In this document: positions 9,956 to 35,686 of the stretch, in pieces | How the letters are laid out: the number at the start of each line of letters is the position of its first letter | Numbering within the stretch: the first letter of the stretch is position 1 | Source of the DNA: Anthoceros angustus | Lineage: Eukaryota > Plantae > Anthocerotophyta | Direction of reading: 5' to 3' | Length of the DNA stretch: 64,000 nucleotides | NCBI GenBank assembly: GCA_010909165.1 | Contig: MU008161.1 | Coordinates: forward strand, 1,736,001 to 1,800,000 | Notes under the pieces: generated by a model | What the model saw: the letters and a program-made list of their open reading frames with translations, nothing else | Databases searched by the model: none | Told to the model about the DNA's origin: nothing | Position numbers and translations under genes: made by a program

Positions 9956-10049
9956 TACTCCCCTTCTCATTTGTTGGCGTCCTCGCCAACTTATTGATAA
10001 TACTTTTCAACTCGCCAACCAACTCTGGTTGGCAAAGGCGACCCATTCA

Positions 10050-20800: not shown

Positions 20801-22416
20801 TTTATTTTATTTGGAAGCTTTTGGCACGAAAAAAAACTGATGGTGTAGACCCAAACTTCCAATGAGCATATCCGCCAGCTCCATCACTAGGGAATTCAGC
20901 TGATCCAGGCACTCGCAACCTTCAATGAAGATATCTCTAGGGAAGAAAGGCTTCTCACAAAACGATTCTTTGTTGCAAAGGAAGGTTATGTGCTACAAGA
21001 AGGACATCAAAGGCCAGCGACGAGGATAACGATGCATTGCAATCTTTTTTCGACACTCATGAAGGGACAAGCCATTAAAAATGAACTTTGAGAATTTTTA
21101 ACAAGGGAATTTGGATCACAGTGATCATTGTGAGGTTAATTTGTGTTGGCCATTAGTACCTAATGTCAAATTTTTATTTTAGATAAGAATTGATCAACTT
21201 CAATATTAGGATACGAAATGTAAAATAGGCTTGTGAAGCAAATAGAAATATGTATAAGGAGTCTCTGAAAGTTTTTATAGGTATATTAATGTGAGAGAAA
21301 TTTCATAGCTTTTTCACAGGACAAAGCTCGAACCAAGGGTAGGTATTATAAGGGCGTAAAAGGGTACCTATTATAAGCACCTATGTAGTAGGTACCGGGA
21401 TCGGGGGAACGTCACCGACCGCCAGTCCCGAACTTCATTTTACACAGTCGGGGACCGGGACCACCGGGAGCGAGGCCGGGATGCCGTTAGACCTGAAACC
21501 CTGTCCGGTGGAAAAAGCGAGAGTGGGTGGAAATTGGCGGTCCCCGGGACCGACAGAGTAGCCGGTCAAAATGAAGCCCTGGTGTGTACCCGTCCGAGGT
21601 CCCAGGAGGTGGGCCAACCCCCTGGATGTAGAAAAAAAGAGTTCGTTATGCTGGATAACACCTGCCTGGTGTGGCAAAGCGGAAGGCCCAAAAATGGAAC
21701 ACAAGTTAAGAGTTAGTGACGTTGTGACGGGAAACATCCACGGTCATGGATGCGGTAACTGGTAGTGGGGATTTTGGTAGCGTTTTGAGGTTGGAAGTTT
21801 GCAGAAGTTGGAGGAGCGGGTGTGTCCTGACGGCATGCACCAGATCCGGCTACAAAAAAACGGCATTGCCGCTCTTGTTGCTGGTCTGTCCTTGTGATAA
21901 AAAGGCAGTGTTCCGTGGGAACAGGGAGGCGGGGGTGAGGTTACCAACCGCGCCGCGACAAGCGCTGCTTGTCGACAACGGGTAGCTCGCGCCTGTGCCC
22001 TGTGCCCTGTGGGTGTCGCCCCCCGCGCCCCTTCAGCTACTTTGTCCCGTTCCACGCACGAAACTCCAACCGTTGCCACCATCTCTGCTCCTGCTCCCAC
22101 TGTCGTTTCCACGCTTCCAAGCCTGGACCGTTGCCCCGCCGCCCTCCTTTTGGTCCTGTACGCCCCCCTCCGGCGTCCCGCACACCCTTCCCTTCCCTTC
22201 CCTTCCCCTCCCTTCCTCTCCTTCCTTCATCACTCCGCCTCCATCCCGAGTCCCCTTCTCGTCCTCATTGCAGCCTCTATCCCGAGTCCTCTTCTCGTCC
22301 TCGTCGCAGCAGCTGGCAATCATCCTCCCCGCCCCGAGCCTCCTGCTCGCGCGCATTTTAGCATTTAGGAGTCCAGTCGTGGAGCTGAATTGCGCGGCTG
22401 GGATGCAGCTGCTCCC

Positions 22417-23835
22417 ATGGACCACCCGGCGCATAGGCATGTGCAACAGGCAGACGGGAAGCCGGCTTCCACACCCGTTGCAGACGCGGAGCAGGACAAC
22501 CAGCAGCAGCAGCAGCAGCAGCAGAGGGGAGTGAAGAGAGGCCTTCCCGTTTCCGCACCAGCACCAGCACCAGCTGCCGTTGTTCCCACGGACGAACAGA
22601 GAGCCGCGAAGCGGGTGAGGCGGGACCGGGGCTCCACTGCCAAGGACCGCATTAGCAAAATCCCGCCCTGCGTGGTCGGGAAGCGGAGCTCCATCTACCG
22701 CGGGGTGACTCGACATCGGTGGACCGGGCGCTACGAGGCGCATCTGTGGGATAAGAGCACCTGGAACCAGAGCCAGAACAAGAAGGGGAAGCAAGTGTAC
22801 CTGGGAGCCTACGACGAGGAGGAGGCGGCAGCCCGCGCCTATGACCTCGCGGCGCTCAAGTACTGGGGGCCGGGCACCATCATCAATTTCCCCGTGACGG
22901 ATTACGCGCGGGACGTCGAGGAGATGCAGAGCGTGTCCCGGGAGGAGTACCTGGCGTCGCTGCGGCGGAAGAGCAGCGGCTTCTCCCGCGGCGTCTCCAA
23001 GTACCGGGGCGTGGCCAGGCACCACCACAACGGCCGCTGGGAGGCCAGAATCGGCCGCGTCTTCGGCAACAAGTACCTGTACCTCGGCACCTACAGCACG
23101 CAGGAGGAGGCCGCCGCGGCCTACGACATGGCCGCCATTCAGCACCGGGGGCTCAACGCCGTCACCAATTTCGACCTCAGCCACTACATCAAGTGGCTCC
23201 GGCCAAGGCAGCCTGGATCCTCCGGGGCCGGGGCCGGGGCCGGCTGTGAAGAGGGAGAGGAGCCGGCTCAGAAACAAAGCACTGTTGCTGCTGCTTCTGC
23301 CGCATCTGCTGTTTCTGCTGCTTCCGTTGAGCAGCAAGAGTCCCAGTCCCAGAGCGGGCCGGAGGAGGAGCAGCCGTCAAGGATGTGGCCGGGGCAGGCC
23401 AGCGAGCCCTACCAGTTCCCGAGTCTAGGGATGAGCAATGTTGGCGCGCGGGCGGGAGCGGGGCTGCAGAGGGCCGCGGCAGCGCAGGCTCCCACGGCGC
23501 TAGGTTTGCTCTGGCAGTCCAATATGTTCAAGCAGATGCTGCAGAAGGCGGCTGTGCATGCGCACTCCCCGGCCGACGGGCAGCCGGAGGCCGAGCAGGA
23601 GCAGGAGCAGGAAGAGCTGGAGGTTGAGGGCGAGGCGGACGGGCTGCCTATTCCCATGCTTCCTGGGCTGGAAGAGGAGCCTCCTCCTGGCCTGGGCTAC
23701 GAGGAGGGGCAGGGCGAGGTGGCCTACCAGGATCTCTCATTCTTCCCCGACGGCCACGACTTGGAGCCCGGCCTGCCCGGCTCGTTCTGGAATTCATTGC
23801 CTTTACACCATCCCCGAAGTCCCATTACGGTGTGA
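22417..23835 (+). CDS. Double-AP2 transcription factor, basal ANT/WRI group, most like the SMOS1/At2g41710 (WRI2) clade; intronless
   Basis: [58 protein letters not shown] (AP2-1), linker [18 protein letters not shown], and [40 protein letters not shown] (AP2-2). First in-frame ATG is 22417. Confidence 0.92.
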
Positions 23836-24500: not shown

Positions 24501-26966
24501 ATGGGGGATGCTTTGTGTGCGCAGTGCGAGCAAGCAAGGGGAAGGATCTTGTGCGTGGACGAGGGGCTGGCGTACTGCAGCAGATGCTCGGCTGAGCTGC
24601 ACAGGAAAAGGGCGCGCAGGCAGCACCGGCTTGAGCTTGTCACGCCTCCTCCCGCTTGCGATGAATGCGAGAAGGCTCAGGCGACTGTAGAGTGCGGGGC
24701 GTGCGGTGGGGGAGAGGAGCCGCTGCTATTCTGCGCTGCTTGTAGTCGGAGTCTTCATGCTCGTGTTGCCCGGTTGCACCACGTGGTGAAGCCTTTTCCC
24801 CAGTTGCTGGTGGAGGCGGGCACGGCGGGGTTAGGGGCTGGCGAGAGCAAGGCGGGGAAGAATGTTCAAGATAGGGTGAGGAATTTGAATTGTGCTGTGA
24901 AGAGCGAGCCGATTGAAGGTTCGTTCGGTGGGGAGCGTATGCACCAGAAGGTGGTTTTCGGTAATCACTTTGTGGAGGTGGAGGTGCCTCTGGGGGCAAC
25001 CGCAGTGCGTAAGCGAGTCGTAGAGGAAGAAGGTGCGGTTCTGGTGGAGAGGGAGCTTCCACATTGTCGCCATAGCTCTGTGGGGCCTGAATCTGGGAAG
25101 AACAAGATTTCTGTCCCGAGTTCTCAGGAGGGAGGAATAGAAGTCAGGAGTGGGATATCCGACTGCGGGCATGCTGGTGCAAGACGTAACGGAAGTCACC
25201 ACGTTGGTGCAGATGCAGGAGTATCCAGGAACACGGCCACCAAAAGGGACCATGACGAGCGGACTCCGGGTTTACATCCTAAACGGCAAAAGCTTAGTCA
25301 AACTAAGTTAAAACCATCCGAGGTCTCTGGAAAAGAGAATGAGGACAACAACAAGGCGGGCAGGCCCATCAAGATCGAGGAGGGTGACGGCCTGTCAACC
25401 AGCACATGTAAGAAAGGCAAGCGTGAAGCTGGGGAAGGACTGTGTAGAGATGATAAGCTTAAACAGAGGTGTGCAAAGCCACTGGAGGATAGCACCAAAA
25501 ACAATTCTGAAGACGAGTACTTCAGCATGGATGATGGTGGATCTCAATCTGACTCCGACTCTGCTTCTTCTGGAGAAGAGGAAGCTGGTGTCCGTCGAAT
25601 CAAACGTGGATCAGTATCGCTTGAAGCATTTGTAGTCACTGCAGAGCATGAAGAGTATGCCGATCACACCACCTCAGGTGTGTGTCTCTTCTCATAGTTT
25701 CTCCGTGACATGGAGCTTATCAGCGGTGAGAAGCTGTTTGGAATGTTGACGCTGGAGGTCCGCGTTGTAGGTGAGGAGCAAGTGGAAGACGCTGGCGGGG
25801 GGGTGAAGGACAGGATCAAGAAGATGCTGAAGCTTGGGTTGCACCCCGACACTCCAGAAGCTGAGGCGCAACAAGCCCTGAAGAATGCACAACGACTTTT
25901 GACCAAGCACAACCTTCAGCAGGTTCACCACATAGTTCACACACTGCTTTCATGGAAGCACCAGACCTAAGCATCAGGATCTCTTGTTCCTGATCCCATG
26001 AAATCCGTTTGTGGTTCATCAGGCTGAGGTCATGAAAGGCGAGCTGAAGGATTCTACGGCACTTGTAGGGGGAATGCGTGTGGTCGAACTTCGAGGGAAA
26101 GGAAGAACGAAACAAGGTCGCTTTGAGCGATGGATCAAGACTCTGGCTTGGGTGATCGCAGAATATTTTGATGTTCAGCATTTTACTCGCGGTGCTACGA
26201 GAACTTCAAAGTTTATACAGGTGCTCCACTTCATCTTCTGGACTGGGTTGGGGGCAGCGATGACGTTTATGAATTTCGCACAAACTAAGCAGCGTTGCTT
26301 TTCTACGTGCAGGTGGTATTCTACGGCATCCGACAGAATGCAGATTGCGCAGGTTATGCATTTGCAGCAACTTTCAACCGGATAACACGGATGTCTGCAG
26401 GATACATAGATCCGGAAAGCAAGAACAGTAGTAATGCTGCGTCGCAACGTAGCACAAACACCAGAATAGCCCGGATGAGCTACAGAGATGGTGTAGTTGA
26501 AGGATTGAGGCAATTCGTGAAGCTGTCTCAGGAGCAACAAAAAGCAGGCTATTCGACCAAAGGTGGGAAGGGACAAGAATCAAATGTGGCCGTATCTGAA
26601 GAGTCTGAAGACGAAGACTATTTCAGCGGAGACGAAGGACCGTCCACCGTAGGCGGTGATGGCGATCACCACAACGCCTTCAACCCTGCGGAATGCAGTG
26701 AGGACAAAAAGGACGCTAAGCTTGCCAAAGCTGAAGAGCGAAGGGTGCAGAGAGGGATGGCAATCTGTGCGTTGGTTGTACATTCAAAAAAAGTTGGGGA
26801 GGATTTCCTGAAAGAAAAGGGGATCAAAATAAGGTTCAAATCCCTGAAGAAGAACGACAGTCGTGTCAATGTGGAAGCGTATTGTCAGGGGAAACAAGAC
26901 TCCAAGCAGATTGATATCAATCAAAAGGGAATTACTTTTGCAACCAAGCATAAATCGAGGAAGTAG
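24501..26966 (+). CDS. Four-exon gene: two B-box-type zinc fingers + low-complexity linker + DUF2786-like domain and associated C-terminal region (726 aa)
   Basis: Exons 24501-25677, 25771-25922, 26023-26220 and 26313-26966; GT-AG introns of 93, 100 and 92 bp that restore frame and remove the TAG at 25695. Motifs CAQC..C..E....CSRC....H and CDEC...CGAC...CAAC....H; KDRIKKMLKLGLHPDTPEAEAQQALKNAQRLLTKHNL; VFYGIRQNA; SYRDGVVEGL. Confidence 0.78.
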
Positions 26967-27295: not shown

Positions 27296-28201
27296 CTAGG
27301 TTGAGGTTGAGCAAACTTTGACCCCCTTAACAGAAGCGGGCCTTGCCTCGCACCTTGCTTTCCAGGCTTGGACATTTTTAAAGCTGTCTAGATCAAGCTT
27401 TTCGGATGCCTGGTAGAATTTTTCCAGACACAGGACCCAAGGCCAGGTCGCTATATCTGCAATGCTGTAACCATCGTCGATGATATACTCTCGACCTTCC
27501 AACCGCTTCTCCAAAACCCCGAGAAGACGCTTGGTTTCTGTTGCATACCGCTCTACTGCGTATGAATCGGTGGTCTTGTCCTTGGCATACTTGAAGAAAT
27601 GCCCAAACTGTTTCACAGCAATCGTTCGTCAGTTAAACGGCAGTTCCAGTCCATGTACAACTATCACGCTTTCTCCAGAACACTCACCTGTCCAAACATG
27701 GGGCCGACACCAGCCATCTGGAAAAAGACCCACTGAATTGTTTCCCATTTAAGTCGAGGATCCTGAGAAATGAGCTTTCCAGTTTTCTCAGCCAAGTACA
27801 ACAAAATAGCTCCTGACTCGAACAAACTGAAGGGCTTCCCGTCTGCAGAATGGCACCGAATTGTGAGCTCAAACTCCTGACACCGTGCGGAAAAACCTCA
27901 GGAAGAAATGACCCCCAAGCAACTACCTGGGCCATTGGGATCGACAATAGCTGGGATCTTGGAGTTGGGGTTAACAGCGATGAACTCAGGTGTGAACTGG
28001 TCCCCCTTCATGATGTTGATTAAGTGTGCGTCGTATTCCAGACCCAACTCCTCCAGAGCAACCCCAATCTTCAAGGCACCACCCACCTGTTAAGCTTAAC
28101 CAAGCCAAAACAAGGTACTTCAGCAACCACAAATCGAGCCCCGACGATACCTTCTGGCCGTTGGGCGTAGCCAAACTGTAGAGCTGGATCTTTGCCGCCA
28201 T
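27296..28201 (-). CDS. Glutathione S-transferase, Ure2p/YfcG (Nu-class)-like; four exons
   Basis: Exons 28201-28151, 28068-27927, 27842-27688 and 27607-27296 (introns 82, 84 and 80 bp). Motifs LYSLATPNGQK, NPNSKIPAIVD, FESGAILLYLAEK, QMAGVGPMFGQ, YSIADIATWPW. Confidence 0.9.
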
Positions 28202-30124: not shown

Positions 30125-32371
30125 TTATGCCTTCCTTCTGAGAGTGCCCTTTGGGAAGCAGCTTAATCGGCTGAAAACTAGACCAGATTTCGGCAAATCT
30201 CCCTTGGAGAGATTGCTGTTGTAGACTTCCCTGCACTCATTGACCACTTCCTTTGCATCTTTGCGAGGGATGCCCTCTCTAAGGGCCACTAACTTCTCAA
30301 CCACTTCAGGTGGACAATCAGGATGACCTTGGAGGAGATGTGTGTACGCAAGTGTAAAAGCATCCACACTCTCTGCTGATGCAAGCTCTCTAAGCTCTGC
30401 CAGCGGCTGAATTCTTTTGTCTACTTTGGCGCTGTTGATGTACTCCTTGAAGAATTCTCCGATGACCTCCTCATCAACCCTCAGCCTGTCCAGAGTCTCT
30501 TCCTTGATGTAGTTCCTCTGAGTTAAAAGGTGATCTACATAGACGATGATGGTCTCTTCCATGCAAGCCTCAGCAAACCTTTGGAAGGAACGGTCATCTA
30601 TGTACATTTTCACATCTCCAAAATAATCACCAAAGGTTGCCACAAGATACTCTGTCACCAACCCATCATACCAGTCTTTGAGGTAGAGCTTTGCAACCAG
30701 CTCCTTGACACCGGGGTCTTCAAATATAACACGGCATGTCTGTTGCACTGCCTCCTTAGCAATCTCTAAGAAGCCCTTGCAGGTATCCTCAAAGTTGACC
30801 TGTTCGGCATAATAAGGAGTAAGGGACTCCATCAGGCTGCTGCTGAGATCCATGGCCAAGCTATAGCATCGAATGTTGTTGTTGATCATGGCACACAAAG
30901 GCTCCAGTCCGATCTCTGTCACCGGATCTTCAAGTCTCTGCCTTTCCGCAACCTGAAACGCACTCATCACCTGGATAACTGCAAGAGCCACCCTGTAAAG
31001 CATAACATCGGTGCTGTTCTCCTGCACATACTGCACCTGCTCACTCAGAATCCTGAAGAGATCCACGGCAGCAGGGGTCCACAGCTTGCCATCCTCACTC
31101 TTCTTGGGGGGCTGGGTCTTATCAGCCTCCAAGATGTTGGTATACCACTTCTGCATAGTCCCCTGCATTCGGTAGACGTAGACATCCATGAGCGGATCCA
31201 TGGCCCCGCTCTCAGCACAGACTTGAGTCAGCTGCTCATCAACCCCTAGGTTCCCTAACTGCACCTGATACTGCACCACCCACGCCGTCACCTTCAAGAT
31301 CTCCAAATTAGACAAGTCCTTGGCCCGGTCTCCAAGCTTCCTAAGCATCTGGATGAACCTCTCGGTATACAGCTGCACCATGAGCTGGAAAATTTCGTAT
31401 CGCGGAGGGAAGCAAGGCGCCACATAGTCGTAGATATCAGGCAATTCTGCCGCAATTGCGCTAGCCTCAGCCAGCGCAGCCTTGAGGTCCGTGTCCAGCA
31501 CCAGCGTGGAGAGCAGGTTGTCGAACCTGGATTCCACAGATTTGCGCATTTCCTCATAACACCGGTCCTTAAACCGCCGGCCTGCAGGCTTAGGCTTGCC
31601 ATCGCCATTCCCGTGCTCCTCCGGCGGCTTCCGGCTCCCTCTGACAGTCGAGAGAGACGCAACAGGCCCGGCCCCCTCCGCCTCCGCCGTGTCCTCCGCC
31701 TGCTGCTGGTCCAGAATCTCCTGCATCTCCACCACTCTGAGGGCCCGCACCAGCGTCTGCGGGCTGGACTTGGAGAGCTGGAAGAAGTTGGCCACATGGC
31801 CCCAGAGCGTCTGCTCGAACTTCTCCCGCGTGCCGTTCACGTCCTCGAAATACTGGCTGAGCTTGCTGGCCTCCTCCTGGCGGGACGAGGCGGCGGCGAG
31901 CGCAAACCTCCGCTTCCCCTCCAGCGCGGCCAGGCGCTCAAACGTGCGCACCAATTCGCGGTCATCGGCGAGCGAGGCCCGCGCCTCGCTCGCCTCCACC
32001 GAGATGGACATCATGCCCTCGACATCCTTGAGCGTGGTGTTGAGGTTGTTGCGCGCATTGCTGAGCAGCTTGATCTGGTCGTGGTGCTCAATCAGCGTCT
32101 GGCACTCGCGGCAGAGCTGGTCGATGAGCAGAAACGACTCCCGCAGCTGCGTGATGGTCACCTGCGCGGCTCCCAGCGCCCCGATCCCGGCCCGCGCGTG
32201 CTCCACCTGCGCCATCACGCTGCTGCTCAGCTGCGTGTCGTGCGCCTGCAGCCGCTGCGCGTACTCGGCCCGCATGCTTGTGATGGACGCCAGCGACTCT
32301 GGCAGCGGCAGCAGCTTCGCCACCTCCCGCACTGCCGCCTCCTTCGCCTCGATCCCTGCATCCTCCAACAT
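30125..32371 (-). CDS. SEC6: Exocyst complex component SEC6; intronless, 748 aa
   Basis: [24 protein letters not shown] start; [40 protein letters not shown] and [19 protein letters not shown] match plant SEC6. Confidence 0.95.
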
Positions 32372-33253
32372 CGTGCTCTGCTGCCGCGCTCTGTCCGCCG
32401 CTGCTACTGCTGCTCCCTTGGAACCAGCTCTTCCTCCTCTCAAACATCCCGATTCACGTTTCCTCCGCCGGCCACTCTGGTCACGACACTACTCGACTGT
32501 CCGTCGTCAATATCGACTTCTGTCGCCCGCATGACCTAAATAAAAGCAAGCCCAGTCCATCTTTCCCGTTTTTAGTGTCAGAATCAGATCCTTCCCCTGA
32601 AACGGTCCTGTGTGAGTACTTATCTACCTACACACGCGCATGCGCATTTAACTGTATGCATTATTGGCTGGACGCAGTCTGCTCTCCGCAATGTGAGCCT
32701 CCACTGTTCAATGATGCAAGGCTTCCGTGATCCTTCCATGTCTCCTCCTCTGGGATGCACCATGGACTTCACGAGTTCACAACTTCACACGGCTACTATG
32801 ACTTATTCTCATGGCCAGCATCTGTTTGCACGAAATGAGCTCCCATTCAACATGCCTCATTACGAAAACGGAACATGAGGATGGCCTCATCCATTTCCCT
32901 CCAGGGTTTCTCTCAGAGCCTCTTGAACAAACCACTGTTCTTCTTCATTCAAATGACCAGAAGTTCTGGCATGCCAATCGGGAAATGCCTGCCATCCCGG
33001 AACTGGGCCCACTGTTGCAGTCCCCAGTCCCCTCGAGGCTCTAAACTGTGGGATCATAGTCTGATGAACGTGCAGGATACGCAAACTTGTCCTGCCACTG
33101 TCGTCCCGGGAGACTTCTGAAAGGGTTGGAGCATTTTTCTGGATGTTTTGATAGTCCGGCCTCTTACGAATAGGAGCTCCCGGGGCAGGCCTGTTGTGGG
33201 GGACGGGATTGTGCTCAGAAAATGTGCTGCAGAGCTATATCTTGCTCGAGCAT

Positions 33254-35686
33254 ATGACAGGACGAATGGCTACCCTTTCTCTGTCGAGCACAGGTCCGTG
33301 CGGATGGTTTCACAACAAATCCTTTTGGTGTCGTTTGTCGCCTAACAATGTGGCGTCCAGCTCCAGGAAAGGTGGGAAGGGAGGAAGGCTCTTCTCCGAC
33401 AGGTCCCAAGTACACGCACCCTGGTTGAGTGTCGACGGCAATGAGGGGCATGTGAGAGCTGGGTTTGATTTGGCTTCACTGGGAAGAGAGAGTCTCCTGG
33501 AAGGATGTGAGCATCGTCCGTGCTTCGACCTGGATTTGGCAGTGCTTCTTGCAGGTTTTGCTTTTGAGTCTTACAACACTCCCCCGGAGAAGGCTGGTAT
33601 CAGGGAAGTAGACGCTATTGATTGTGAGGTCACCTACACCGATAATCAATTCCTCAGGGAAGTGTACAAGGGACTGCTGAAAGTAAAGCTCAAAGGAGGT
33701 ACCAACCTACCTGGCCTAGATCTGTGGGGCACAAGCGATCCTTACGTGGTATTCAACATTGGAGGAACTGTTGCACGGAGTAGGACCTGTTGGGCTACTC
33801 TGAAGCCCGTGTGGAACGAGGCATTTAGCCTGAATGTGAAGGATCCAAGCAGTCAACTTCTCAGCATTGCTGCATGGGATGCCAACATCATCACAGCACA
33901 CAGGAGGCTGGGGAACACGAGTGTCAGTTTGGAGCCCTTTGCCGATGGGGAGAAGCATGTGTTGGAAGTTCAGCTTGAAGGTATCGGTGGTGGAGGTGTT
34001 CTAACTCTTGAGATCCAGTACAGAACGTTTGAGCAGCTGGATCTGGAGAACCGTGGATGGGGGATTAACCTGCTGTCAGAGTTTCTGAAAAGTGAAATGC
34101 TGGATTCTGCCATCAGATCAGTGTTTGGGAAACAAGGTATCAAAGCACGGGACTTCGTTAGTTCAGCCTTTGGGTTGGACCCTACAAGCCAGCTCAGTGC
34201 TGGATCAACGACCTCCACAGATAACGAAGGTGGCTCAGAAGACAAAACAGCAACCTCCTCTGGCTCAAAAAATGAAGGGAAGGGGTCAGCCAGTGATGAC
34301 CTTGATTGGAAGTACTTGCAGCCAGTAAGCAGTGCAGTTACTCGGGCGATTGAGTTCTTCCGGTTAGGGCCTGCAGAACTTCCAAGAATTGATCTGTCTA
34401 ACTGGCAACTTGATGACAAGATGATGGCCATTGGTTTAGAGTCTCAGGCCAAGGCCGAAGCTCAATATGTTGAAAGGGGGCTAGCGTTACCTGGTGAGCA
34501 GGAGGGAGGCAAACTGAGTGGTACACCAACTGTCACAACCTCAAATCCAAAAGACTTGCAGCAAGTATCCAGGGATACCCTCCATCAAACGGAAGAAATT
34601 CTTGGCTCATGGATGATGCAAACATTGGCTGCAACCGGAGCCTTGAATGAGAGCACAGCTTCTCACAGCGAAGAGCGAGGTAAAGAGAGCGATGACCCAT
34701 CTGGACGAAACGTAGCAAGGCAGAAAGCTACAAAAGACATCTTCAAGACAGCTGAAAGTGCAATGGAGGCTTGGGCAATGCTGGCTACTGCATCTGGAAG
34801 TCGAAGTTTTGTGAAGTCTGAGTTTGACAAAATTTGCTTTGTGGAAAACAAGAGAACAGACACTCAAGTTGCTGTGTGGAGGGACGACAGACGGAAACGA
34901 GTCGTTGTTGCCTTTCGAGGAACAGAGCAGACAAAGTGGAAAGATGTTCAGACTGATCTTATGCTCGTACCCACCGGGTTGAACCCAGAAAGAGTGGGAG
35001 GAGGATACAGCAAGGACGAAATCATGGTGCACAGCGGTTTTCTGACCGCTTACGATTCTGTGAGACCGCGTCTTCTTGCAATCACACAGGACATAGTGCA
35101 GACGGGCAACAGTCCTGATGACAGCAAACGTCATGTGCCATGGCATGTGTATGTGACTGGGCACAGCCTTGGTGGTGCCCTTGCCACACTGTATGCCCTG
35201 GAGCTTGCCAAGTCCAAGCTCGCAAAGGCCGGCCTGATCAGCGTATCCATGTACAACTATGGCTCTCCCAGAGTGGGAAACAAGGCCTTCGCGGAGAAAT
35301 ACAACGAGCTAGTAAAAGACAGCTGGCGCATCGTGAACCATCGAGACATCATCCCAACCGTGCCAAGACTCATGGGCTATCGCCATGTAGCGGAGCCCAT
35401 CTACCTGGCGAAGGGCATAAATCTGCTGGGCCAGGAGGAGACTCTGGACCTGTTAGAAGATGGCTACCGAGGAGACACTATTGGCGAAGTTTGTCCTGAC
35501 TACATCATGGAGGAGGTAGTGAGAGGCGAGATGCAGCTGCTGGAGAAGCTGATCCACACAGAGGTAGCCATGTTTAAGTCGATCAGGGACGGCAGTGCAA
35601 TTATGCAGCACATGGAGGACTTCTACTACATTGCACTACTGGAGCTTGTGGAGACGAAGATGACTAGTGGCAGGAGAAGCCTGTAA
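33254..35686 (+). CDS. Plastid-type C2-domain class 3 lipase (At4g13550/HIL1-like); intronless
   Basis: FDLDLAVLLAGFAFESYN, C2 domain GLDLWGTSDPYVV...PVWNE, AFRGTEQTKWKD, GHSLGG catalytic motif, RIVNHRDIIPTVPRLMGY. Start could be 33254 or 33266. Confidence 0.9.
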   Translation: MTGRMATLSLSSTGPCGWFHNKSFWCRLSPNNVASSSRKGGKGGRLFSDRSQVHAPWLSVDGNEGHVRAGFDLASLGRESLLEGCEHRPCFDLDLAVLLAGFAFESYNTPPEKAGIREVDAIDCEVTYTDNQFLREVYKGLLKVKLKGGTNLPGLDLWGTSDPYVVFNIGGTVARSRTCWATLKPVWNEAFSLNVKDPSSQLLSIAAWDANIITAHRRLGNTSVSLEPFADGEKHVLEVQLEGIGGGGVLTLEIQYRTFEQLDLENRGWGINLLSEFLKSEMLDSAIRSVFGKQGIKARDFVSSAFGLDPTSQLSAGSTTSTDNEGGSEDKTATSSGSKNEGKGSASDDLDWKYLQPVSSAVTRAIEFFRLGPAELPRIDLSNWQLDDKMMAIGLESQAKAEAQYVERGLALPGEQEGGKLSGTPTVTTSNPKDLQQVSRDTLHQTEEILGSWMMQTLAATGALNESTASHSEERGKESDDPSGRNVARQKATKDIFKTAESAMEAWAMLATASGSRSFVKSEFDKICFVENKRTDTQVAVWRDDRRKRVVVAFRGTEQTKWKDVQTDLMLVPTGLNPERVGGGYSKDEIMVHSGFLTAYDSVRPRLLAITQDIVQTGNSPDDSKRHVPWHVYVTGHSLGGALATLYALELAKSKLAKAGLISVSMYNYGSPRVGNKAFAEKYNELVKDSWRIVNHRDIIPTVPRLMGYRHVAEPIYLAKGINLLGQEETLDLLEDGYRGDTIGEVCPDYIMEEVVRGEMQLLEKLIHTEVAMFKSIRDGSAIMQHMEDFYYIALLELVETKMTSGRRSL

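Follow-up and report, generated by a model that had tools for sequence, protein, structure and literature searches.

A predicted four-exon gene of Anthoceros angustus joins a double B-box to a DUF2786/DUF7168 module found in other land plants, in other eukaryotes and in phages

Results and Discussion

Gene structure and protein architecture

The stretch of Anthoceros angustus DNA analysed here (the window: 64,000 nucleotides, positions 1,736,001 to 1,800,000 of contig MU008161.1, assembly GCA_010909165.1) carries on its forward strand, at 24501-26966, a gene of four exons and three canonical GT..AG introns with a frame of 726 codons, by reading of the sequence and translation of the exons, which joins two B-box zinc fingers to a C-terminal module of the DUF2786 and DUF7168 families (Table 1). 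The codons add up as 392+1+50+66+217 = 726, followed by a final TAG, and the introns (93, 100 and 92 nt) all have the form CAG/GT ... CAG/G. Exon 1 contains the start codon, which agrees with the N-termini of aligned homologues, both B-boxes, a long linker and an acidic patch rich in Ser, and it also encodes the beta-strand with which the C-terminal module opens. Positions 48 and 50 of the DUF7168 profile meet across intron 3, and such unbroken continuation of a domain profile argues strongly that this intron is removed as proposed. A sequence-only reading had described a cleanly spliceable four-exon gene for a protein of 726 residues, and the frame, the splice sites and the continuity of DUF7168 over intron 3 bear this out. 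The sequence shows 24501-26966 to be a nuclear host gene, intact and with four exons, of a land plant outside the seed plants.

The head of the protein matches the ANCHR-like B-box family of Pfam (PF22586) in two stretches of exon 1 (32 bits against a cut-off of 27), a model that fits exon 1 better than zf-B_box (PF00643), which stays below its cut-off (19.4 versus 24.1 bits). B-boxes of the BBX family have the spacing C-x2-C-x8-C-x2-[DE]-x4-C-x2-C-x4-H-x7/8-H. In an alignment of 11 plant homologues, none of the 16 zinc-ligand positions in the two fingers varies (position 21 is Glu), and both fingers, recognised as B-box-like in the sequence-only reading, are predicted zinc-binding B-boxes with eight ligands each in B-box spacing. 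Exon 1 resembles two related loci, a genomic contig from another organism with far higher G+C content (L001; Logan SRR33208241) and a locus of the conifer Cryptomeria japonica (L002), at its two ends only, namely the B-box part (58% identical to L001) and the tail (66% identical to L001); the linker between them had no tblastn match.

The C-terminal half begins with DUF2786 (PF10979), which exon 2 matches over profile positions 2-40 of 40 (43.2 bits versus a cut-off of 23.9, E = 3.8e-11). DUF7168 (PF23771, cut-off 25.5) follows directly, its first part in exon 3 (27.4 bits) and positions 50-117 in exon 4 (41.7 bits); the W..LA..IA.YF, FYGI..NA..A..AF and SY.DGV..GL blocks that had been noticed downstream of the correctly called DUF2786 are motifs of DUF7168. 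A further motif near the C-terminus, ALVVHSKKVG..KGIKI..EAY..GK.DSK.IDINQK, is kept in eukaryotic relatives and in a protein from an unclassified contig (P0146, described below). Among PHROG profiles, phrog_421, the function of which is unassigned, matches exon 2 (E = 1.8e-7), exon 4 (E = 1.1e-6) and the contiguous homologue P0002 (E = 1.7e-20, positions 9-172 of 241), and the microbial and fungal kinship suggested earlier for the DUF2786 half is real in that the module is common to bacteria, phages (phrog_421) and fungi. Profile and similarity searches used individual exons or contiguous homologues as queries. NCBIfam has no match for the module, the defence-system models of PADLOC match none of five module proteins, and no catalytic signature was recognised in the protein.

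One gene or two

Read on past the proposed donor, the frame of exon 1 meets a TAG (25695) after six codons, and the frame of exon 2 is open from an in-frame ATG at 25710. The locus could accordingly be read as two genes, a B-box protein ending at the TAG and a stand-alone DUF2786/DUF7168 protein starting at the ATG, in keeping with the phage versions of the module, which stand alone, and with the Cryptomeria paralogue L002, in which an in-frame TAA separates an intact B-box open reading frame (ORF) from a module ORF and which is annotated as a module-only protein of 367 residues. Three observations make this very unlikely. The motif RRIKRGSVSLEAFVV near the end of exon 1 immediately precedes DUF2786 in plant homologues and in homologues with a Tudor head (described below), and is modelled as a beta-strand (residues 17-22, block predicted local distance difference test score [pLDDT] 87 and 75; model m756f316ec45e). 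The conserved RGSVSLEAFVV strand thus belongs to the module in these relatives and in the model, and therefore a split at 25695 would cut off the module's first element. Intron 1 is retained in L001 at the same position and in the same phase. Finally, both halves lie within single ORFs in liverworts, ferns and gymnosperms; such ORFs of 550-631 residues include a transcriptome ORF (P0016) and two Logan contigs of about 2 kb (P0007 and P0008), each with a whole ORF of 550-559 residues that covers both halves.

As one gene, the locus has a close counterpart in L001, in which the four exons, a double B-box and the sites of all three introns recur (exon 2 is 86% and exon 3 77% identical). Cryptomeria lacks intron 1; introns 2 and 3 are at sites common to the window gene, L001 and Cryptomeria L002, and exon 2 is 83% identical to that of Cryptomeria. 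The predicted junction 25677/25771 is supported by these comparisons among relatives.

At the Cryptomeria locus L002 (L002:9611-10564; LOC131026771), the double-B-box ORF of 127 residues stops at the in-frame TAA at 9992-9994, and the module ORF starts in the same frame from an ATG at 10001; in the Cryptomeria paralogue P0005 the equivalent stretch is one continuous exon. L002 resembles a fusion that has come apart naturally in one of the conifer paralogues.

A land-plant family

Three queries were used to seek relatives: exon 4 in a word search, the Cryptomeria protein, and the module of a Riccia protein, the module search accepting proteins of 342-1088 residues. The word search matched the L001 product, one JGI protein and one Cryptomeria protein. 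Relatives were found in liverworts (Marchantia paleacea, Riccia fluitans, R. sorocarpa and Calypogeia fissa), ferns (Adiantum capillus-veneris, A. nelumboides and Ceratopteris) and gymnosperms (Cryptomeria, with three proteins, Ginkgo and Taxus). The tandem B-box is present in the full-length relatives from all three groups, by Pfam or by direct alignment, and the DUF2786 hairpin is nearly identical throughout land plants. The predicted window gene is one member of this conserved land-plant B-box-DUF2786-DUF7168 family. No angiosperm, moss or lycophyte protein was among the matches of the Cryptomeria-protein and Riccia-module searches, which is not proof of absence; the predicted protein of the window gene was itself missing from the collection searched.

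The sequence-only reading had held DUF2786 not to be a standard seed-plant domain, which the fusions of Cryptomeria, Ginkgo and Taxus contradict. It had also not recognised the architecture as a described one. No paper on it was found, and to that extent the statement stands, but this genome is not alone in having the fusion, which is spread over liverworts, ferns and gymnosperms and is already in NCBI and UniRef under automatic names ("B box-type domain-containing protein" in UniRef for the Riccia and Adiantum proteins). This goes some way towards the refuting condition named with that reading, a fusion widespread and already annotated. The literature holds nothing on DUF2786 beyond table entries, nothing on DUF7168, nothing that cites the orthologue identifiers and nothing relevant on BBX evolution, as far as searched. 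The family is new to study, not to databases, and both of its halves belong to Pfam families.

One relative, P0168 (R. sorocarpa R1sor_019377, 828 residues), has a YGGT domain (PF02325) in addition, and is probably a merged gene model and not a true fusion.

Genomic surroundings

The neighbours of the gene are ordinary nuclear genes, with genes for AP2, GST, Sec6 and C2-lipase proteins nearby (Table 1) and OTU and NPL4 genes farther on. A transposon-borne gene was considered and rejected: the gene is present in a single copy in the window, has ordinary host neighbours and shows no tie to a mobile element. The AP2 ORF has 64% G+C, and long ORFs on the opposite strand are open across 22033-23337, probably as a result of base composition. 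Sec6 and the C2-lipase are each encoded by one long unbroken ORF, which is unusual among plant genes of that size.

Table 1. Features of the predicted B-box-DUF2786-DUF7168 gene and of its neighbours in the window
Feature	Coordinates	Strand	Remarks
Exon 1	24501..25677	+	392 codons + 1 base, open frame, ends in phase 1; donor CAG/GTGTGT at 25677/25678
B-box 1 (aa 5-43)	24513..24629	+	PF22586, E 1.3e-7; C6-x2-C9-x8-C18-x2-E21-x4-C26-x2-C29-x4-H34-x7-H42
B-box 2 (aa 53-94)	24657..24782	+	Second PF22586 stretch; C53, C56, C65, C68, C78, C81, H86, H94
Linker (aa 101-340)	24801..25520	+	Charged, little conserved; KKGKR basic cluster and stretch KRQKLSQTKLK, both resembling nuclear localization signals
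Acidic Ser-rich patch and motif RRIKRGSVSLEAFVV	25521..25676 (motif 25593-25637)	+	N-terminal strand of the module
Intron 1	25678..25770	+	93 nt, phase 1, GT..AG; contains in-frame TAG at 25695
Exon 2	25771..25922	+	DUF2786 helical hairpin (25803-25922)
Intron 2	25923..26022	+	100 nt, phase 0, GT..AG
Exon 3	26023..26220	+	First part of DUF7168, profile positions 5-48
Intron 3	26221..26312	+	92 nt, phase 0, GT..AG; interrupts DUF7168
Exon 4	26313..26966	+	Remaining DUF7168 (to 26540), acidic spacer, C-terminal motif (26757-26933), basic tail KHKSRK, stop TAG
Double-AP2 transcription factor	22390-23835	+	Directly upstream
GST	27296-27616	-	Neighbour
Sec6 (772 aa)	30125-32443	-	Neighbour
C2 + class 3 lipase (830 aa)	33194-35686	+	Neighbour

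The module in other eukaryotes

A profile search of 1.84 billion representative proteins gave 2106 matches at E<=1e-3, 213 of them at E<=1e-30. The best 150 of the 2106 are mostly long proteins that carry the whole module at the C-terminus together with the motif ALV.HS..V....L...IK...EAY..G..DSK.ID..Q. Named members come from the diatom Thalassiosira exigua, the cryptophyte Baffinella frigidus and the fungus Mycena, and many others are unnamed marine proteins; the ESM Atlas adds a cluster from Ascomycota and clusters from phages. Among 64 N-terminal parts scanned with Pfam, four have a PTM/DIR17 Tudor domain, and PB1, Coilin_N, protein kinase and B-box domains occur once each; many relatives share an unassigned start, MIRVKIR..LRFDESI..KLG.

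Several of these groups can be located individually. In P0018, P0019, P0020 and P0169 (Logan/ENA/JGI) the module stands behind a PTM/DIR17-like Tudor domain, and this group adjoins the land-plant clade in the tree described below. The MIRVKIR..LRFDESI..KLG start precedes the module in P0042, P0052 and about 25 other ENA/JGI/Logan proteins, a large group of marine eukaryotes; the T. exigua proteins P0035 and P0078 belong to the same large tree group as P0042 and P0052. The single PB1 and Coilin_N matches among the 64 N-terminal parts are not assigned to a particular member. P0146 (250 residues; L003:8001-8753, contig PJEL010000435.1 of GCA_003358065.1) is a stand-alone complete module with the C-terminal motif, encoded in a compact array of genes on the same strand with a DnaJ-like gene two genes downstream. 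There were no PHROG structural matches on this contig, and the PHROG scan did not show it to be phage.

Descent

A tree of 167 module sequences (LG+G4 model, quick search, unrooted, with almost no bacterial or phage sequences), in which the window is represented by the exon 4 piece only, places this piece inside a land-plant clade of 20 sequences with a Shimodaira-Hasegawa-like approximate likelihood ratio test (SH-aLRT) value of 97. Within the clade, the window and L001 form a branch of their own (SH-aLRT 99), outside the liverworts (98), ferns (99) and gymnosperms (100). Beside the clade stand the Tudor type, a cryptophyte group and P0024 with P0146, the last on a branch of length 1.42 and with unsure placement; the fungal and diatom-containing groups are separate and large. 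With the copies from land plants in a single clade, and that clade divided along plant lineages, the pattern fits vertical descent with later losses rather than recent transfer.

The sequence-only reading had offered horizontal acquisition and patchy retention side by side, and these fare differently. Patchy retention accords with the lack of angiosperm, moss and lycophyte matches. A recent transfer of the module from a bacterium or phage into this plant lineage, followed by fusion to a B-box gene, would account for the matches to phrog_421 and to Pfam families described from bacteria and phages, and P0146, a whole module on a compact-array contig, lies near the plant set in the tree; but the gene has three spliceosomal introns, two of them shared with a conifer, the fusion occurs in four land-plant lineages with a tree that follows those lineages, and more than 200 strong relatives are long proteins of eukaryotic type. 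Recent transfer is scarcely credible on these grounds.

An older origin is another matter. Phages or bacteria may have passed the module to eukaryotes long ago, once or several times, or eukaryotes may have passed it to viruses, with patchy spread and fusion to various heads afterwards. Such a history would explain why phages, fungi, a diatom, a cryptophyte and plants have the module and why it was not found in angiosperms, and also why P0024 and P0146 fall beside the plant, Tudor and cryptophyte set and not outside all eukaryotes. Against this, the tree is unrooted, with almost no bacterial or phage sequences among the best 150, and the branch of P0146 is long (1.42). We put ancient transfer at somewhat less than even odds; it concerns origin only and is compatible with the account of the gene as a member of an apparently vertically inherited land-plant family.

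Phage relatives and their neighbourhoods

In tailed phages the module is encoded alone, usually beside replication genes. The gene for gp005 of Bacillus phage AR9 (L006:2531-3223) is in an early operon, after an SbcD-like nuclease and between a DprA-like gene and the DnaB helicase; that for gp124 of phage SP-10 (L007) precedes a DNA helicase; and in phage PMBT69 (L008) about 3 kb separate the homologue from the Pol III alpha gene upstream of it. Gp74 of phage AXL1 has been listed in a module for replication, repair and packaging (PMC9206674). The gene for gp34 of Streptococcus phage Dp-1 adjoins an RNA 2'-phosphotransferase and is about 3.4 kb from a Holliday junction resolvase. A tblastn search of phages with the plant-type module gave one marginal match, and a search of bacterial genomes with P0146 gave no related loci.

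Structure models and possible function

Two AlphaFold models of the module were made, one of P0002 (18 sequences; pLDDT 69) and one of P0013:250-612 (117 sequences; pLDDT 80.9, predicted template modelling score 0.73). In both, DUF2786 is modelled as two helices. The order of elements in the second is a strand, the two helices of the hairpin, a short helix, a beta-alpha-beta-beta-alpha domain, two long helices and a final helix. The structural comparison proposed with the sequence-only reading has thus yielded a confident model (pLDDT 80.9), but no PDB match by Foldseek at E<=0.001. Shape and feature searches of the ESM Atlas returned only the same family.

The fold of the DUF7168 core raises the possibility that it is a KH-like single-strand nucleic-acid-binding domain, which would make the protein a binder of RNA or single-stranded DNA. 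Type I KH domains have the order beta-alpha-alpha-beta-beta-alpha with a GXXG loop. With both models, type I KH domains fill about half of the first 50 VIA-align rows, aligned over residues about 97-180; the best of them reach Z scores of 7.1-7.2 with root-mean-square deviations of 3.3-3.4 over 79-80 residues, and the region is basic (isoelectric point 10.4 for exon 3 and 9.9 for the first part of exon 4). These Z scores of about 7, however, do not exceed the background given for models that have no true match, Foldseek returned nothing, and the stretch between beta1 and beta2 is modelled with a single helix. There is no KH match in Pfam and no conserved GXXG; a Gly-rich basic loop is not kept in ferns, fungi or P0146. 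Membership of the KH family is improbable.

A J-domain-like, Hsp70-recruiting role for the DUF2786 hairpin, in which the plant sequence reads LGLHPDTPEAEAQQALK, is less probable still. The tripeptide HPD, which recalls the loop of DnaJ, is found between the helices in the plant, Tudor-type and P0087 sequences, and among 117 sequences the hairpin His reaches a conservation of at least 90%. J domains, for comparison, have four helices and an invariant HPD loop. Here there are two helices, the Pro and Asp are not conserved beyond the plant-like group (SHEQTG in Mycena, FHDQSN in P0042), Pfam finds no DnaJ match and no J domain is among the structural matches. With only the His conserved family-wide and no DnaJ signal, the J-domain reading was rejected as highly improbable.

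Heads of the B-box, Tudor and PB1/coilin-N-like kinds are typical of nuclear proteins, where they serve in interaction, oligomerisation or the reading of marks, and plant and Tudor-type sequences have a basic C-terminal tail. Because of the phage neighbourhoods, the nuclear-type heads, the charged linkers with their putative nuclear localization signals and the basic tail, we propose that the protein may act in the nucleus as an adaptor. The C-terminal module would be the working core, engaging nucleic acid or a partner linked to DNA replication or repair, and the N-terminal head would be an exchangeable targeting or oligomerising part; in the land-plant proteins, the B-boxes would bind partner proteins or self-associate. 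This fixed-module mechanism is tentative, and on balance doubtful. Several results weigh against it. The predicted nuclear localisation comes from basic clusters only. Foldseek with both models against the PDB gave nothing at E<=0.001, profile searches of the PDB gave no sequence relative, and the best VIA-align match, at Z 7.2 on KH domains, is within background for unmatched models; the missing GXXG and the unconserved Gly-rich loop count here as well. The phage neighbourhoods are few and were chosen by similarity to one query, and that of Dp-1 consists mostly of hypothetical genes.

Taken whole, the explanation of 24501-26966 as a four-exon gene of a land-plant family with a product that may work as a nuclear adaptor has, in our estimate, a probability of about 0.6, the gene model and the family placement being much more secure than the proposed mechanism. 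A bolder generalisation, unlikely to hold in full, is that the strand, DUF2786, DUF7168 and the C-terminal motif make up a eukaryote-wide nuclear module, shared with phage replication regions, that may act on DNA, RNA or a replication or repair partner and that individual lineages have placed behind targeting heads of their own (a B-box in land plants, a Tudor domain in what are probably algae, a PB1/coilin-N-like part in the clade with the diatom); the version with a B-box would be an ancient land-plant regulator lost by flowering plants.

What makes the family interesting is the breadth of an orphan module, its exchangeable heads, its link to phages and its seeming disappearance in flowering plants. 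Conservation of the module extends from phages to fungi, diatoms and plants without flowers, and no solved structure of it and no paper on it were found. The family is a blind spot, and the module was not found in the model flowering plants in which most plant genetics is done. Its interchangeable N-terminal heads point to a logic of targeting that is directly testable, and M. paleacea and Ceratopteris are tractable systems for the function of the module.

Comparison with known systems

The window protein has in common with the plant BBX (CONSTANS-like) regulators an N-terminal tandem B-box with B-box ligand spacing. Members of that family carry, in addition to B-boxes, a C-terminal CCT domain or VP motif. 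It differs from them in having no CCT domain and an unrelated C-terminal half; Pfam found no CCT match in any exon, and with PF00643 below threshold the protein does not belong to the BBX/CONSTANS-like family.

With the phage proteins of phrog_421, such as AR9 gp005 and Dp-1 gp34, it shares the helical hairpin and the alpha/beta domain. The phage proteins stand alone, have about 190-250 residues and about 25% identity, and are without B-box, linker and N-terminal strand. P0146, from its unclassified compact-array contig, has the C-terminal motif too, and Pfam and PHROG profiles match the phage or bacterial proteins and the window protein alike.

The other eukaryotic fusions, namely the Tudor type (P0018-P0020), the PB1/coilin-N-like type of the diatom-containing clade and the fungal Mycena type, have the same whole C-terminal module. 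Like the window protein, they keep the preceding strand and the C-terminal motif and have the module behind a long acidic or charged linker; their head is a Tudor, PB1-like or kinase domain, or none, where the window protein has a B-box.

Closest are the land-plant relatives, among them R. fluitans R1flu_018486, M. paleacea Mapa_013292, A. capillus-veneris GOP47_0004038, C. japonica LOC131080023 and Ginkgo Gb_06311, in which the architecture is that of the window protein: tandem B-box, linker, acidic patch with the EAFVV strand, DUF2786, DUF7168 and C-terminal motif. The window protein is longer (726 residues as against 550-631) and its linker has diverged, and the window gene has an extra intron before DUF2786, shared only with L001, in which the other land-plant relatives differ. 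The module pieces of the window are 45-67% identical to the nearest full-length relative, P0013.

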